From Ramazzottius varieornatus (taxonomy: Eukaryota > Animalia > Tardigrada), in assembly GCA_001949185.1 (NCBI GenBank), contig BDGG01000014.1, positions 1,472,586 to 1,536,585 of the forward strand: a DNA stretch of 64,000 bases, written 5' to 3'. The notes under the pieces were generated by a model. The model was not told the DNA's origin. It was given only the letters and a program-made list of their open reading frames with translations, and did no database searches. The translations under genes and the position numbers were made by a program. Numbering within the stretch: position 1 is the stretch's first letter; each line of letters begins with the position of its first letter. Shown in pieces: positions 1 to 6,518 of the stretch.

Positions 1-731
1 CTGCATGCCTCTTGAATATTCGAAAGTACCTATCCGTTGATGTGTGCCTTGGCAGCTAGCTTTATACAACACTTTTAGCCTTCTTTTCGTCAGATGTTCT
101 TAACGTACTCCTACTCTTTTATCAAGACATTTAAATATGAAGCAACGGATTGTGGCGCAATGAACGTTGGTTGTAGGTAGAAAAAGCAGGTCAGGCGAGC
201 AAGAGCTGCACGTTGATGGTATTAGGCCCGCTAGAATAGGGTAAAGAACGCCGATTGGCCTGTTATGATGATTATATTGATGATGGCTTTGTGATTCCTC
301 CTGGCCTCCACACAACGCGCCAAGCCACAATGCTAACTCAACTTTCCCGCCATAGTTGGCCGGCGTCGTCATGGCGTAAATGATGGCCAGCACAACAATG
401 AAACAAGATGGAAAGTGAGAATGTTATTGGCCCATCAGACAAATTATTCAGTCAGCGTCGAACCTTTCGTGGCGGTCAGAAGATTAGGTGGCAGGTCTGT
501 TGTCATCATTGCACGGCAGGCGCTGACCGTCGGCCATAATACAGTAGCTACATCTCTGTACGCGTAGTTGGGTATATATGGCCTCTCCACCTCTATCCAC
601 CTCTATCTTCATTTTCCATCGAGAAAGAACTGTGTAGCATATCTGTAGCATTTACATTTTGACTTTCGACATCTGCCTTGCTTCAGTCTTTTGGCTGACC
701 AGGGGAGAATAAAGCCTGTGGTGCTGCAGTC

Positions 732-1996
732 ATGAGGGCCGGAAGTGCCGCCTTCATCCTCCTATCTTGTTTGCTTGTTTGCATCTGGACTGGAGGTTCG
801 TCCGCATATCATGGCAAAAACTGGCTGGCCATAACTGTGCGATAACTATCATGTGGTGCTTTTTGTAGTGAGCGATGCCATCCAGTGTTACCACTGTGAG
901 TCCAGTCCGCGCGACGGCAAATTTTGTCGAAGGACGACGGAAGCCCGCCTGATCGACTGTGACTCCACTTTTTGCAGTGCTCTGGTCTGGATGGAAAACG
1001 GTAAGCGCAGTGCCACGAGGTTCCTCGGGAAAGCGTTCCCCTTGTACGCCATCATGATCTGCTGCATGGCTCTTGACAGGTCAAGTCAGGGTCCATCGAG
1101 GCTGCCAAGGACACATTTCCAGTTGGGGCTTTGGGCGGTCAGAATGCGACATTATGCAGTCTGACCGTCTGATGGACACTGGTGTGGCCTTCTATCAATG
1201 CCGAGGCGATGCCTGTAATAACATCGAGCCTACGGAAGAGACATCCAGCAAGGTTGTCTTGATGACGCAGTCAAGCGCTAACAGCCAGCACTCCAGCATG
1301 ATGTCGCAGTCCCAGTCTATGCAAGACAGCAGCGACAAGGAGGAGTCTGTCAGTTCCGTTTCCAGCAGCGGGATAAACTCCCAAGCAGGTGGTAGGGCCT
1401 CTGCCGCCTCAGCTTCCTCCTTCCCTTCTAATAAGGGCAACTCGGCTGCAGGCCAGTCGCATGACATGGATATCATGTCCAAGAACCATCGTAAGCAGAA
1501 GAAAGTTGTGATTGCCGACGATGACGAGGGCGAGGGCGAGGAGGACAGTTCGTACGGCGCCAAACCCAAACCTAAGCCACGACCACCACCACCACCACCT
1601 CCTCCTCCTCCAAAGCCAGCCCAAGTTCGCCAAGAAGAGGAAGCCCCAAGGCCACCCCCGCCTCGCCCTCAACCCAGGCCAACGCCTCCTCCATACAACC
1701 AGCAAGAAGTACTGCCGGAAGAAGTGACAGAACAACGTAAAGTGGTCACACGTAGGCCGCCCCCTCCGCCACACCCGCCCAAGCCCAGGCCAACTCCACC
1801 ACCACCACCGCCGGAAATAGAAGATGAAGTACCGGAAGAACAGACCGAAGCGCCGGCTTATGTTCCCAGAACCACACCGATGACTAAAGCTCGACCAAAG
1901 TATGGAGAGGACATCGACATCAAGGAGGTCACCCAGATGGAGCAGGTGGTGACAAGACCTCCAAGACGGCGCTTTACTGTTTTTGACCGCAAGTAA
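732..1996 (+). CDS. Secreted three-finger/Ly6(LU)-like domain protein with Ser-rich and Pro-rich tail (paralog A, ~370 aa, 3 exons)
   Basis: Exons 732-795, 869-1000, 1080-1996 joined by phase-1 GT-AG introns. Signal peptide MRAGSAAFILLSCLLVCIWTGVSDA. Cys pattern IQCYHC..C..C..C..RGC..C..YQCRGDACN, then Ser/Gln-rich, acidic and poly-Pro segments; ends ...RRRFTVFDRK. TATATA at ~573 and AATAAA at ~2076. Confidence 0.85.
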
Positions 1997-2764
1997 AATA
2001 TCCTTACTTGATCTCTCCTCAAAAGTTTGCTCATAATAGCCTGACGCTCTTGTGCTTTGATACTTTATAATAGAAAATAAACATTGACTGTAAGATGTGG
2101 ATGATCTTTCTTTTGGTTTTTCTACTCAAGAACATTTTTATGCTGCTAGCAGGCTAGCTACTTCTAGAGTATACAGTATGGCGGAGCAAGCTATCAATAA
2201 ATACGAGTTGAATCAAGATATGGAAAAGGAGGCAAGAGCTGCCGACGGGAAGCACGCGTCATTCACTGTATACACATGAGATTAGTAGCGCTCCATCGGG
2301 GCAACTGCTGGCCTGTAAACGAGTGGATACACGTGCCAAAAGTGAGAAGAATTAGAAAGCTATTGGACTTGAGCGGCAGCTTTTTCAAACATACAAGTTG
2401 CAGCTAGGCACTTTCGATCATCAGATCAGAAAAACAAGAAAAACTGCACAGTAGCGTAGTTCCGCTTCCTTCACTCTTACTTTCTGAGCGACAGGCATTC
2501 TTCCGTAACCTTCCCTGCTGCCACTGTCATTGGTAAGGCTACAACAAGGAAAAAGGCTTCCAAGAGAGTCAAACACAAACAGGTGAAAAAGAAGTCAAAC
2601 TTCCGCAATCAAGGATACAGGCAGGCCGTAAAGTCAGCGAGCCACGAAGCAAAGACAAGGCGAACTTCTGCTGGAAAACTTACTCTTCCACTTAGACACT
2701 AATCAAGACTCGATCGGGGATCCAGTGCAAATTTAATTGGTACTTCCGCTTGTAAGCGTAAGGA

Positions 2765-3351
2765 ATGATGGCTATCAATGGAATCACTCTTATCCTTGTC
2801 TTGTCGGTCATTGGTAAGTGGTGAAACGTTGGAAGTAGCTCCATATGATCCGATGGCTGTATGGCTGCGTCAATGCAGGTGCAAGCAGGGGTCTTCGCTG
2901 CTTCGTCTGTCTTCCGGATGCCGCAACAGGAGAAAACTGCCGCCAGATCGCTGGCCAGAGCCTACAAAATTGCACCAGCGATACGCGACATTGTGTGGCC
3001 GTCGTTCTGGGAGATGCCCTTGGTACCATAACCGTCTTCCGCGGCTGTGGAGGTCATGTTCAAAATTTCAACATGGGAAGTGACGAATGCACAATGCTGG
3101 ATAGTCGACAGGACGATCTGCCTGCCGGTCAGTGCTTTCAATCCTTTCTTCCCATGGGTCTGCTGCTGAGACTAATGTCCATCTGTATTTCAGCTTACTA
3201 CAAATGCAAAACTGATGGCTGCAATAACATTGAACCGATCACCACGGAAGTAACGGAAGTTATTCGTGCTTCGCCCATTCTACTCACTGTTAATGGGACC
3301 GTTGCTCCCGCCGCCGTCGCCACCGCCGCCGGCAGTCCGGTTGGGGGTTAG
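2765..3351 (+). CDS. Secreted three-finger/Ly6-like protein (paralog B, ~151 aa, short tail)
   Basis: Exons 2765-2813, 2879-3127, 3194-3351. Signal peptide MMAINGITLILVLSVIGASRG; LRCFVC..C..C..C..FRGC..DEC..YYKCKTDGCNNIEP. AATAAA at ~3535. Confidence 0.82.
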
Positions 3352-3983
3352 CTATTTGCCGAACACTGAGTGCTGAGCCAGAGTTTTTTGGCCTAGTTGA
3401 GGGCCGGGTTCTCTGTACTTTTGCATATACAATTCCGTTGACGCGTGTGCTCGCATCATATCTTGCACCGGCGTGCAAATCGTACAGTCGATATGCTCCT
3501 TACTACCCAAGTATTGTGTTGTTTTCAGGTCAAAAATAAAAATTTGTAACTGCATGTTTCTTTCTTCGCAAGGGGCTATTGTTGGTTACGTCGCAGCTGG
3601 CCTCTGTTTGTGATTTCGCAAGCAAGAAACTTACAGTCTCTGCCCCAAGCATTTAAGAGTTGAAAGACCGTTGTTACGACACTTAATTTTGATGTATGGG
3701 CTGATGGCATAATCACGCAAAAGTCGTGCAGTGGTGACCGAAGGATGTCGAAAAATTCTAACGTTACGTACACATCGATCGATGACCGATAAATGGTTTT
3801 GGAACTCTTCTTGGGGTATTGACAACATCAAGAGCTGGCAAGGCTCGAAGGAAAAAGAGAAGCAATTCAACAGGAGGGAAAAGATCAAGTAGGCTACGAT
3901 AAAAGGGCAGAAAAAGATCCCTCATTGCTTATGGCAGTCCTAGCTACTTGTCTGTAATGACGGGCTTGAAGGTGAACATCACT

Positions 3984-6518
3984 TTACTTTCGGTCGAAGA
4001 CGGTGCGGCCTCTAGGACGGGGTCGCATGGTTACTTCAGGCTGCACATCGGGCAAGATCTCTTCTCCTCCATAAGATGGTGGCTTGGGTTTCTTGGTGGT
4101 GGTAGTAGTAGTTGTCGTGGTGGTAGTGGGCTTGGTGGGTCGAGGACCATAAGCGGCGGCGCTGTCATCGCTATCGCTGTCGTCGCTTCCGGAAGCGGCC
4201 GATTGTTTCACTTGTTTGCTCCTGGAGCTGGAGGACTTGCTGAAAGAGGAGCTAGACTTCTTGGATGAGGAAGAAACCGATCCGGAAGCTTGGGCGCTAC
4301 CAGCGGTCTTGACCTGGCTTTGGTTATCAGCCTCATCTCCGCTGTCATCGGCGCTGTCATCGCTATTGTCACTGTCTTGCAATATCGACGACTTGGCAGC
4401 CTTCCGTTGGATCGAGGCGTTTTCTTCGCTGGCTCCGGCGCTCAATAGCTCGCTGGCTTGGTTGGAGCCAGAAGAGGCTGCACGACTGGAGGATGAAATC
4501 CTGGCGGACTTGGCCTTCAGAGCAGCCATGGTTCGCTTGCTCTGCTGCATGGCAGCGGCGGCCTTCTTGGCCATCTCGGCCTTAGCTTGGTCTTGGGAGT
4601 CGTCGGCAGAGTGGTCAGAGTCAGAGTCAGAGTCCGAGTCCGATCCGGCCGACTGGCCGGAGCTGGACGAAGACTTCTTCATGGAAGAGGAAGCGGACAT
4701 GCCAGAGCTGGCCGACGAAGACTTGGCCGATCCACTGACGGCGGCCTGGGGACCGAAGGACGTAGCGGACGAGACCGATTGCTTACCACGGGCTTGCTGG
4801 TCATCAACACCTTGGTCGTCGGACTGGTCCTCACCTTGGTCCTGGTCTTGGGAGGCCGACTGTTCTTGGCTGGACGAAGACTTTCTAGCCTGCATGCTGG
4901 ACGACGAGGAGGACGATTTGGACTTCATGGCAGCCATTGTTTGTCTGCTCTTCTCCATTGCGGCGGCAGCTGTGGCAGCCATATCAGCCTTAGCTTGAGC
5001 CGCGTCATCGTGTTGGTCATCCGAGTCGGAATCCTGACTAGAGCTGGAAGACTTGGACTTCATAGCAGCCAAAGTTTGCTTGCTCTTGGCCATTGCGGCA
5101 GCAGCTTTGGCGGCCATATCAGCCTTAGCTTGAGCCGCGTCATCGTGTTGGTCATCCGAGTCTGTGTCGTGGCTAGAGCTGGACGACTTGGACTTCATGG
5201 CGGCCAAAGTTTGCTTGCTCTTGGCCATTGCAGCGGCAGCTGCGGCAGCCATCGCCGTCTTGGCATCAGCCTGGCTTTCTTGTTGGTCGGAGTCAGAGTC
5301 CGAATCCGAGGAGTCAGAGTCAGAGGCAGACTGTTGGCTGGAAGACTTCTTGTCCGAGCTGGAAGACATTTGCGATGACCTGGCCTTCAGAGCAGCCATG
5401 GTTTGCTTGCTTTTGGCCATAGCAGCGGCAGCCTTGGCGGCCATTGCAGCCTTAGCTTTGGCCTGGTTGTCTTGCTGGTCCGAGGAAGAATCGTCAGAAT
5501 CCGCACTGTCCTGGTCGGCACTGTCGGAGGAAGCGGACGTGCTCTTGGATGAGCTGGACTTGGAGGTGGAACCTTGGGACTTGGACTGAGCGGAAGCCGA
5601 GCCGGAGACCTTGGCGTTCTTGCTGGCAGCCAGGCTGCTCAATAGCTGGGCCGACGAGGACTTGGAGCTTTGGCTCTGGGCGTCAGAGTCTTGGTCGCCG
5701 CTGTCTTGGTCATCGTTACTGCTGGACGACTTCTTGGCCGACATCGACTTGGCTGACATGGACGATGACTTGGAGGATGAAGACTGCGATTGGGAAGAAC
5801 CCATAGTGAATGAGATACGGCCATTACTGACCGCACCAGCTTCAATGTTGTTACAGCCATCACCGCGGCATTGATAAAAGGCAGCGGCAACGTTGGAGAG
5901 CTTGGAGCTGCTGATGACGCTACATTCATCACCCATCTTCCATGACTGGACATTGCTCGCGCAGGCTCGGTGAACCTTTATCGAACCTACATGATACGAT
6001 AAGGTGAAATCCCCACTGTATCTTTGCTCCCTTCTAGAAGGTCACCATTTAGATTTTCAAATAGAATTTACGTCTCCTTTCATACACATATTCAGCATTA
6101 TGTAACGACCACCACACCAAAGCCACCGAACAACAAAATGTATGTTAAACGTCGTGAATTTGCCGAGGTTCGCCGCATGATATAGCGAAAGGTCATGCGC
6201 GGCTCTATTTCCGCGATATTCCAAAGAGCAAGGCCTACCGTTATCGTCATAGAGGACAGCTGCGCAGTGCTCGTCGGATTCCCCGCAGTCGGTCAGTTTG
6301 TCATCGGTTGCCTTACTGCAGTCCTGGCATTCGTAGCATTGAAGGGCGGAAGCTCCATCTGTAAAAAACACCCAAATGTTAGATTAGGTGCCTGCAGTTT
6401 AAGGCGGAATGTCTGAGGGGACGCGAGAGGGGAATAAATAGATCCAGAGGAATAACAGCGGGGTACCTTGCAGGAGGAACAGAGTGAGTGCCGTAGCACA
6501 AAGGACGAGGGACCTCAT
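3984..6518 (-). CDS. Secreted three-finger/Ly6-like protein with long Ser/Asp-rich and Ala-rich repeat tail (paralog C, ~724 aa)
   Basis: Exons 6518-6467, 6358-6239, 5986-3984 (phase-1 introns). Signal peptide MRSLVLCATALTLFLLQDGASA; LQCYECQDC..C..C..HRAC..DEC..FYQCRGDGCNNIE; ends ...RPRGRTVFDRK. TATATAAA on the minus strand at ~6592-6599. Confidence 0.87.
4500..5465 (-). repeat. Coding tandem repeat in paralog C: five Ala-rich blocks (QAKAxMAAKAAAAMAKSKQTxAAxKxK) alternating with Ser/Asp blocks
   Basis: Near-identical 135-bp units (45 aa) start at 4981 and 5116. More diverged copies at ~4510-4590, ~5190-5275 and ~5380-5465. Confidence 0.9.

Follow-up and report, generated by a model that had tools for sequence, protein, structure and literature searches.

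The LU (Ly6/uPAR) domain is characterized by ten plesiotypic cysteines bonded 1-5, 2-3, 4-6, 7-8 and 9-10, and LU genes follow a common plan, in which a signal-peptide exon is followed by two LU exons, with phase-1 introns and an arrangement in small gene clusters (PMC6600238). The 7-8 disulfide is regarded as essential for single-LU proteins to fold, and its natural loss within the family is rare but recorded; in GPIHBP1 mutants, an unpaired LU cysteine most likely leads to multimerisation (PMC6600238).

The window analysed here, 64 kb of the genome of the tardigrade Ramazzottius varieornatus, contains at positions 732-6518 three adjacent spliced paralogues, A and B on the plus strand and C on the minus strand, with the following features:

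573..580, plus strand: TATA-like box of gene A (pattern scan), 152 nt upstream of the A ATG
732-1996, plus strand: gene A, RvY_17106, three exons, 370 aa
732..795, plus strand: A exon 1, signal peptide, with a phase-1 GT donor at its end
869..1000, plus strand: A exon 2, first half of the LU domain (Cys1-Cys5), followed by a phase-1 intron
1080..1996, plus strand: A exon 3, second half of the LU domain (to 1228), tail, C-terminal module and stop codon
1145-1147, plus strand: codon of the unpaired Cys7 of A, within exon 3
1229-1993, plus strand: A tail, 255 aa, Ser/acidic then Pro-rich, disordered
1859-1993, plus strand: conserved C-terminal module of A, ending in TVFDRK
2076..2081, plus strand: AATAAA signal downstream of gene A
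2765-3351, plus strand: gene B, RvY_17107, three exons, 151 aa
2765..2813, plus strand: B exon 1, signal peptide, phase-1 donor
2879..3127, plus strand: B exon 2, LU domain from Cys1 to Cys7 (Cys7 codon at 3088-3090)
3128..3193, plus strand: B intron 2, 66 nt, in frame, no stops
3194..3351, plus strand: B exon 3, Cys9-Cys10-N-N-I-E-P, 38-aa tail and stop codon
3535..3540, plus strand: AATAAA signal downstream of gene B
6518-3984, minus strand: gene C, three exons, 724 aa
6592..6599, minus strand: TATA box TATATAAA of gene C (pattern scan), 74 nt upstream of the C ATG
6467..6518, minus strand: C exon 1, signal peptide
6239..6358, minus strand: C exon 2, first half of the LU domain (Cys1-Cys5), phase-1 introns on both sides
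3984..5986, minus strand: C exon 3, second half of the LU domain, tail, C-terminal module and stop codon
5922-5924, minus strand: Cys7 codon of C, within exon 3
3987-5840, minus strand: C tail, 618 aa, Ser/Ala/Asp-rich, with five Ala/Met/Lys blocks and a poly-Thr run
4911..5252, minus strand: recent tandem duplication in the C tail, 135-nt unit, 2.5 copies, 87% matches
3987-4121, minus strand: conserved C-terminal module of C, ending in TVFDRK

The spliced products of A and B are identical, letter for letter, to the database proteins P0004 (RvY_17106) and P0001 (RvY_17107), respectively, and all of the sequence features that an earlier, sequence-only reading had claimed for the three genes were located. 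A, C and a further paralogue, D, follow the usual LU plan, having three exons and both introns in phase 1; B departs from it, its second intron having moved towards Cys9. Since this intron is in frame and free of stops, a read-through ORF exists. Over the splice junction the Paramacrobiotus orthologue of B, P0003, has the same residues, and on the genomic contig of a near relative the region appears as two separate ORFs, P0002 and P0011. The TATA boxes attributed to A and C are both present as octamers, and represent two of the 11 matches that the pattern scan returned in the 64-kb window, where 7.2 are expected by chance. A promoter motif common to the paralogues was looked for and none was found.

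Each of the three proteins carries a signal peptide and one LU domain that ends in C-x4-C-N-N-I-E (CRGDACNNIE in A, CKTDGCNNIE in B and CRGDGCNNIE in C); the Asn directly after Cys10 occurs in all members, as C-N-N or C-N-D. Spliced A and B score 29.3 and 30.8 bits, respectively, against Pfam QVR (PF17064), above its gathering cut-off of 27.3 bits, as do the orthologues P0006, P0009 and P0010 (27.5-28.0 bits). Exon 2 of A by itself matches QVR with an E-value of 0.023, and C, scored exon by exon only, matches UPAR_LY6 on exon 2 (E 0.0077). Confidence in the AF2 models is low to moderate (pLDDT 63-83 for the A head, about 50 for B). The proteins that Foldseek matches to them best are, with few exceptions, of the three-finger type, but with E >= 0.2, and the VIA-align neighbours, again almost all three-finger, have Z-scores of at most 4.0; the fold search proposed earlier points weakly to the three-finger fold, with which the make-up of the neighbours is consistent, although each match is individually insignificant. 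The Atlas model of B gives TM values of 0.52-0.56 to QVR, uPAR and PLA2-inhibitor clusters. With QVR above cut-off for spliced A and B and structural neighbours that are nearly all LU proteins, the proposal of three paralogous, secreted-type LU genes holds. Membrane attachment by a GPI signal or transmembrane helix, which is typical of LU proteins without defining them, is absent from the tardigrade members: A, C, D and the paralogue RvY_06664 lack a hydrophobic C-terminus and end in a charged ...FDR(K/R), and the B tail is only weakly hydrophobic and without a convincing GPI signal, the tail of its orthologue ending in polar or charged residues. A, B and C are putatively secreted single-LU proteins without a membrane anchor.

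RvY_06664 and D, the latter unannotated and 672 aa long, are tailed paralogues located together on another contig, unlinked to the present locus. The "three-gene cluster" is therefore accurate for the three adjacent genes, but the family comprises five genes over two contigs. Four orthogroups can be distinguished (A-type, RvY_06664-type, tail-less B-type and C/D-type), and orthologues are present on environmental contigs and in Paramacrobiotus. Searched with phmmer, 1.84 billion representative proteins yielded just 11 relatives at E <= 1e-3; those that are named are tardigrade proteins, with no arthropod name among them. The nearest outsider, P0014 (E 2e-4), provides a very weak link to the wider QVR family. 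Close orthology to Retroactive, Boudin, Coiled or Crooked was considered and rejected on the same search. As far as can be seen from sequence, the subfamily appears to be a tardigrade-restricted LU-mucin, known to date from tardigrade or tardigrade-like sequences alone. The nematode setting of the sequence-only reading (a polar plug, and tBLASTn across nematodes) is abandoned, since the host is a tardigrade. Its description of the subfamily as undescribed stands: our literature searches found no paper naming these locus tags or accessions, and a 2026 survey of invertebrate LU proteins gives tardigrades only as "LU, RK" architectures.

The LU domains of A, B, C, RvY_06664 and their orthologues contain nine cysteines each; D has eight, both Cys7 and Cys8 being gone, and L016 has eleven. 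Aligned with CD59 and with a 10-Cys QVR protein, the domains show the loss to be at Cys8, and Cys7 is consequently left without a partner. Because natural loss of the 7-8 bond has precedent in the LU family, the nine-Cys state represents erosion of the pattern and not exclusion from the family. No tail contains a cysteine.

As had been noted, the tails that follow the CNNIE motif differ greatly in length (38 aa in B, 255 aa in A and 618 aa in C), and both translations bear out the claim that those of A and C are built in one order, from a Ser-rich segment through acidic, Y-G, Pro/Thr-rich and Y-G-(G)-E segments to the conserved ...TVFDRK. The tails are very hydrophilic, with 20-28% Ser, Thr or Pro, and that of A is modelled as disordered (pLDDT below 50). 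In the tailed members the middle is a fast-evolving, low-complexity region rich in Ser/Asp, Pro or Thr: the head is 46-77% identical between members, the middle only 22-44%, and for the final 45 aa the figure is 43-80%. The C-terminal module consists of an acidic-Tyr segment, poly-Thr, a basic patch, a Tyr-Gly/Pro-acidic segment and an Arg-rich ...T-V-F-D-R-K/R end, and each of the nine full-length tailed members, those of Paramacrobiotus among them, retains the FDR(K/R) terminus. Ala-rich blocks occur in C alone, five in number and with 2.5 recent copies, the duplicated unit encoding an Ala/Met/Lys block and a Ser/Asp run. Being C-specific, recently duplicated and absent from D, these blocks are not the conserved feature. 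New in this analysis are RvY_06664 and D, the Paramacrobiotus and environmental orthologues, the loss of Cys8 and the pattern of conservation at the head and C-terminus.

Our preferred reading, to which we assign a probability of roughly 40%, is that A, B, C and their relatives act outside the cell, as mucin-type glycoproteins in an apical extracellular matrix such as the cuticle, the egg envelope or a surface coat. What the sequences show is the gene structure, the domain family, the lost cysteine, the pattern of conservation and the restricted distribution; we infer the matrix location, glycosylation, Cys7 pairing and any joint action of A, B and C. The LU head would serve as the binding unit, possibly as a disulfide-linked dimer through Cys7, the middle of the tail would form a hydrated and probably O-glycosylated spacer, the C-terminal module may provide a second docking or processing site, and B would be a head-only partner of the tailed proteins. 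The secretome that builds the C. elegans cuticle is enriched in secreted low-complexity or disordered proteins (PMC9629831), a general analogy from an ecdysozoan cuticle. A matrix role is plausible. The lack of chitin-binding, vWD, cystine-knot or other matrix domains by Pfam counts against it, as do the low to moderate confidence of the structure models, the individual insignificance of the fold matches, the failure to find a promoter motif common to the paralogues, and the single free cysteine per chain, since disulfides alone would then yield dimers and no polymers. LU proteins, moreover, are mostly receptor or channel modulators, a role that the head fits equally well.

That A, B and C are co-secreted subunits of one material, with B as a linker or cap, is speculation. 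In an extended form, which we consider unlikely, all five paralogues would be subunits of a tardigrade-specific material or coat, in which the freed Cys7 pairs covalently, the TVFDRK module supplies a second valence and B ends the chains. Such a coat might lie at the cuticle surface, in the egg envelope or in a desiccation-related layer, and would be the first case of the three-finger fold serving a structural role as a polymer former.

The proteins could alternatively be secreted receptor or ion-channel modulators similar to SLURP, Lynx or Quiver/Sleepless, in which the LU head performs the function and the disordered tail and C-terminal motif do no more than tune range, tethering or half-life. 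Receptor and channel roles are the best-known LU functions (PMC6600238), the best Pfam family is QVR, i.e., Quiver/Sleepless, the Atlas and PDB neighbours include Lynx1, Lynx2, SLURP-1/2, Lypd6 and neurotoxins, and B, small and secreted, is a plain LU protein. We nevertheless find this reading somewhat doubtful: a conserved unpaired cysteine and a lost 7-8 bond are unusual in single-LU ligands (PMC6600238), and no known LU modulator has tails of such length (255-618 aa) with a C-terminal module that is conserved between tardigrade superfamilies. In addition, none of the characterised arthropod QVR proteins came up as a close orthologue in the phmmer search.

Lineage-specific protective proteins are a well-known trait of tardigrades, and the apparent restriction of the family to this group, its very hydrophilic, Cys-free tails and the five Ala-rich blocks of C, set between Ser/Asp runs, would all suit extracellular anhydrobiosis protectants, whose tails act as disordered shields or vitrifying agents in drying, and whose LU heads target cell surfaces. 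This role is improbable, however, as homology to CAHS, SAHS, MAHS or LEA proteins is lacking, together with any FABP or other such Pfam match; the Ala/Met/Lys blocks are confined to C and have a low hydrophobic moment (0.30 or less), and the literature searched yielded no heat-solubility or desiccation-response data. Membership in the same domain family as the insect Ly6 proteins raises a further prospect, that of epithelial barrier or junction organisers similar to Boudin, Coiled, Crooked and Crimpled, or of a Retroactive-like helper in the assembly of the chitin matrix. Septate junctions require insect single-LU proteins (PMC6600238, PMC3058042) and cuticle integrity requires the Ly6 protein Retroactive (PMC3561106). 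All Drosophila LU proteins have a predicted GPI anchor, and over half of them are of the single-LU kind with 10 cysteines (PMC6600238), whereas the tardigrade proteins have nine and no anchor; since the named phmmer relatives also include no arthropod protein, we regard such a role as very improbable.

The subfamily offers a clean and conserved case of neo-functionalisation, in which a single LU domain without the 7-8 disulfide, and with a free thiol, is joined to a mucin-like disordered tail bearing a conserved motif at its C-terminus. If its members reside in the cuticle, egg envelope or surface coat, they would provide a molecular handle on the almost unexplored tardigrade extracellular matrices, as well as a natural test of how well the three-finger scaffold copes without a core disulfide; should they be ordinary secreted modulators, the gain in annotation would be modest.

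Like gel-forming mucins, lubricin (PRG4) and spidroins, the tailed proteins have folded or conserved ends around a repetitive, fast-evolving middle rich in Ser/Thr/Pro or Ala. The silk/mucin-like architecture suggested earlier is upheld as a folded head, fast-evolving middle and conserved C-terminus, but the domains that define silks and gel-forming mucins are absent. As judged by Pfam, A and its relatives contain neither the vWD assemblies nor the C-terminal cystine knot that surround the Pro/Thr/Ser domains of gel-forming mucins, and with Cys-free tails they resemble gel-forming mucins in composition alone; likewise, the SMB and hemopexin domains of lubricin are missing, leaving a purely compositional likeness, and there is no match to the conserved helical N- or C-terminal domains that accompany Gly/Ala-rich repeats in spidroins, the N-terminal domain being LU. 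The Paramacrobiotus orthologue of A is named "proteoglycan 4-like" by the NCBI pipeline. GPIHBP1 similarly combines an LU domain with an acidic disordered region and Tyr in an acidic context, but its acidic region is short and N-terminal, with sulfated Tyr, and the protein is GPI-anchored and found in vertebrates only; the acidic-Tyr motifs of the tardigrade proteins may also be sulfated. C4.4A/LYPD3 possesses a Ser/Thr/Pro-rich, O-glycosylated stalk after its LU domains. The tardigrade proteins share with it the order of LU head and mucin-like region and an LU domain without the 7-8 disulfide (PMC6600238). C4.4A, however, has two LU domains, the first without Cys7 and Cys8, and a GPI anchor, whereas the tardigrade proteins have one LU domain, retain Cys7, lack an anchor and bear a far longer tail; outside the domain family the comparison turned up no homology. 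Like the Quiver/Sleepless-type QVR proteins of arthropods and nematodes, they consist of a signal peptide and one LU domain, with HMM scores just above cut-off, and share three exons, phase-1 introns, small gene clusters and Asn after Cys10. Unlike the QVR proteins, they have no GPI signal and nine cysteines (Cys8 lost, Cys7 unpaired), and all but one of the five paralogues have a long disordered tail that includes a conserved C-terminal module.

The three neighbouring genes A, B and C lie in the window, which spans positions 1472586-1536585 of contig C14 in the R. varieornatus assembly G000 (55.8 Mb, 200 contigs), and are each composed of three exons:

732-795, 869-1000 and 1080-1996, + strand: gene A, 370 aa
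2765-2813, 2879-3127 and 3194-3351, + strand: gene B, 151 aa
6518-6467, 6358-6239 and 5986-3984, - strand: gene C, 724 aa

All of the introns (65-252 nt) are of the GT...AG type. Each product carries a short hydrophobic leader at its N-terminus and a single cysteine-rich domain that closes with C-x4-C-N-N-I-E, after which 255 residues follow in A, 38 in B and 618 in C. TATA-like boxes are found 152 nt 5' of the ATG of A and 74 nt 5' of that of C. The description of the three genes in the sequence-only reading is confirmed as far as the sequence goes. Once spliced, A and B are identical, letter for letter, to the deposited R. varieornatus proteins RvY_17106 and RvY_17107; the genome is that of a tardigrade, and the earlier suggestions of a nematode genome, a polar plug and a tBLASTn search of nematodes consequently fall away. 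No mention of the RvY locus tags or accessions of these genes was found in the literature searched.

The second intron of B (3128-3193, + strand) is 66 nt long, in frame and free of stops, such that an unspliced ORF call (2845-3351) acquires 22 surplus residues and two surplus cysteines. Where the exons of spliced B join, the B-type orthologue of Paramacrobiotus (P0003) has an identical sequence, and the same stretch on the genomic contig of a near relative is represented by two ORFs (P0002 and P0011). For C, the splice model is supported by comparison of sequences: its exon plan is matched exactly by that of its paralogue D, the C-type head (LU domain) of an environmental contig, L016, runs in one unbroken frame spanning both junctions, and exon 3 of C stays open for more than 650 codons. 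A search with this exon, saturated by 8000 low-complexity candidates, recovered no database protein. The searches with C used its single exons, and D was read as ORFs; the joined versions of both were used for translation, alignment and tree construction. The + strand antisense to the C tail also contains open frames at 4216-4998, 4587-5378 and 5164-5589 (141-263 aa), which were rejected as genes and regarded as by-products of the biased composition of the tail. Rfam and tRNA scans of the 64-kb window yielded no matches, and the promoters of the five R. varieornatus paralogues share no 9-10-mers beyond chance expectation.

Single exons produced only weak matches to the QVR and UPAR_LY6 families. 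The spliced proteins A and B scored 29.3 and 30.8 bits, respectively, against the Pfam QVR family (Quiver-family u-PAR/Ly-6-like), the curated cut-off being 27.3, with lesser matches to UPAR_LY6, CD59 and Toxin_TOLIP. AlphaFold2, supplied with an alignment of 9-10 sequences, modelled the head of A as beta-rich with moderate confidence (pLDDT 63-83, residues 50-115), its tail as disordered, and B with low confidence. In a Foldseek search with the A model, nearly every top row was a three-finger protein (ectodomains of activin and BMP receptors, CD59 and snake toxins), all of them with E >= 0.2. VIA-align against 48,161 chains gave Z <= 4.0, led by toxins, Lypd6b, GPIHBP1, PSCA, SLURP-2, Lynx1 and CD59, and in the ESM Atlas both A and B have LU families as their neighbours in structure and in features (TM 0.52-0.56 for B). 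Profile and single-sequence searches of the PDB returned CD59 alone (E 0.6-8), which served for the cysteine register only. The gene plan agrees with the textbook LU plan, i.e., a signal exon and two domain exons, phase-1 introns and a small cluster (PMC6600238). We accept A, B and C as LU proteins, the fold matches on their own not being decisive.

The LU signature consists of ten cysteines, bonded 1-5, 2-3, 4-6, 7-8 and 9-10, with an Asn following Cys10 (PMC6600238). The domains of A, B, C, the paralogue RvY_06664 and the orthologues contain nine cysteines. Alignment to CD59 and to the ten-cysteine QVR protein P0014 identifies the missing residue as Cys8; the lone cysteine lies 17 residues from Cys9, like Cys45 from Cys63/64 in the CD59 alignment. 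The loss of Cys8 leaves Cys7 without a partner, the tails being devoid of cysteine and the signal peptides containing no conserved one. D contains eight cysteines, with both Cys7 and Cys8 gone, and its loss of Cys7 fits the designation of Cys7 as the odd cysteine. The head of L016 contains eleven, the two additional ones adjoining Cys7. LU proteins that have naturally lost the 7-8 bond are very rare, and the bond has been termed indispensable if single-LU proteins are to fold (PMC6600238). What is most unusual here is that a natural and conserved group of single-LU proteins lacks this bond and leaves Cys7 unpaired. In GPIHBP1 mutants, unpaired LU cysteines most likely lead to multimerisation (PMC6600238), and chains of the present family may pair with one another through Cys7.

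The family has five members in R. varieornatus: A, B and C in the window, and D and RvY_06664 on contig C3. The members outside the window for which loci were read are as follows:

L014:2680-4873 (G000:C3:934179-936372), + strand: D, unlinked and unannotated 672-aa paralogue of C
L015:2250-2849 and 4615-4968 (G000:C3, ~670-673 kb), - strand: RvY_06664 (P0008, 257 aa), the fourth tailed member
L016:110-1589, + strand: environmental C-type relative on JGI contig Ga0184642_1293323

D follows the three-exon, phase-1 plan of C (exons at 2680-2731, 2836-2955 and 3027-4873 of its locus), with a TATAAAG box ~75 nt upstream and a protein that closes ...RGRTVFDRK; no database protein was recovered for it. 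RvY_06664 ends in ...TIFDRR, and the intron between its LU exons (~1.8 kb) is far longer than those in A to D. Paramacrobiotus metropolitanus possesses A-type (P0006, "proteoglycan 4-like"), B-type (P0003) and 06664-type (P0010) orthologues, the first two on one 414.5-kb scaffold, and further members (P0005, P0007, P0009, P0013 and L016) occur in other assemblies. The tail of L016 shifts frame near base 1120 and then runs off the contig end in Ala/Thr/Lys repeats; the break could reflect a frameshift, an intron or an assembly error. Some full-length orthologues are unbroken frames on contigs of ~1.0-1.3 kb, which may be transcripts and, if so, would point indirectly to expression.

A tree of the heads comprises four groups, namely A-type, 06664-type, B-type (100/100 support) and C/D-type; together with the Paramacrobiotus orthologues, this places the origin of at least three groups before Ramazzottius and Paramacrobiotus diverged. 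With B as the query, an exhaustive phmmer search of 1.84 billion representatives retrieved no more than 11 proteins at E <= 1e-3; the closest one outside the family is a two-domain, ten-cysteine, hydrophobic-tailed protein (2e-4). The subfamily is narrow and, as far as the named sources go, restricted to tardigrades. A 2026 survey of invertebrate LU proteins reported the highest LU gene counts in tardigrades, and gave LU and receptor kinase as their only architectures.

The tails vary greatly in composition from one member to another. That of A is rich in Pro (20%) and Ser (11%), that of C in Ser (28%), Ala (17%) and Asp (11%), and those of the Paramacrobiotus and environmental members in Thr (19-23%). 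Five Ala/Met/Lys blocks are set between Ser/Asp runs in the C tail, part of the array being a 135-nt tandem duplication (2.5 copies, 87% identity). Their absence from D indicates that the blocks are recent and do not represent the conserved feature of the tail. Two elements are conserved: a series of acidic residues leading into (S/T/A)-Y-G, and a C-terminal module composed of an acidic-Tyr segment, 7-11 consecutive Thr, a basic patch, Tyr-Gly/Pro-acidic and an Arg-rich stretch, ending ...T-V-F-D-R-K/R. Compared in pairs, the members are 46-77% identical over the head and 43-80% over the last 45 residues, against 22-44% for the middle. Judged from these sequences, the pattern suggests that bulk properties (hydration and probable O-glycosylation) count in the middle of the tail, and that both ends would make specific contacts. 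In the full-length AlphaFold2 model of A, the C-terminus is not docked on the head, with confidence below 50 in that region; a complex prediction for the head (residues 22-120) and the last 40 residues of A scored 0.00, which is uninformative by the rule of the tool.

When the whole genome was searched for ...TVFDR[KR]-stop by means of a degenerate DNA pattern, the matches included A, C and D. The further matches were rejected as an unrelated repeated 21-mer, ACTGTTTTCGACAGCARGTGA, which codes for Ser instead of Arg. Its copies, identical save for one A/G position, occur at five sites in the genome (L019-L021, L023 and L025), and the 21-mer probably belongs to a dispersed repeat:

C1:5511355
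C1:6576835
C2:851031
C4:3149818
C10:183028

The proteins described here are LU proteins of the secretion type that lack an anchor and have disordered, mucin-like tails; a GPI anchor on B was judged unlikely from the sequences of its orthologues. Regarding their role, we favour, with a probability of roughly 0.4, glycoproteins of an extracellular apical matrix or coat. Binding would be the task of the LU head, which could pair through Cys7; the middle of the tail would act as a hydrated spacer, and a second site for docking or processing would be provided by the C-terminal module. The proposal that B acts as a cap is speculative, and is compatible with a head-only protein of one valence.

The same proteins might instead be secreted modulators of receptors or channels, a possible though distinctly less favoured role. 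It is rather doubtful that they act as extracellular protectants against desiccation, and quite improbable that they are junction or chitin-assembly helpers resembling insect Ly6 proteins. Membership in the silks, the gel-forming mucins, the SAHS/CAHS proteins or the orthologues of insect Ly6 proteins was weighed in each case and rejected. Of the sequence-only reading, which proposed a secreted structural or adhesive material, the observation stands and the interpretation is supported only in part. The value of the locus lies in the conserved single-LU head, with its nine cysteines and no 7-8 bond, and in the architecture of LU domain, tail and C-terminal motif, rather than in any demonstrated "secretion system".

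Among known systems, the apical matrix or coat glycoproteins proposed here resemble C4.4A, which combines LU with a Ser/Thr/Pro stalk, and GPIHBP1, which combines LU with an acidic disordered region. A further analogy is the C. elegans secretome that builds the cuticle, in which secreted disordered proteins are enriched (PMC9629831).
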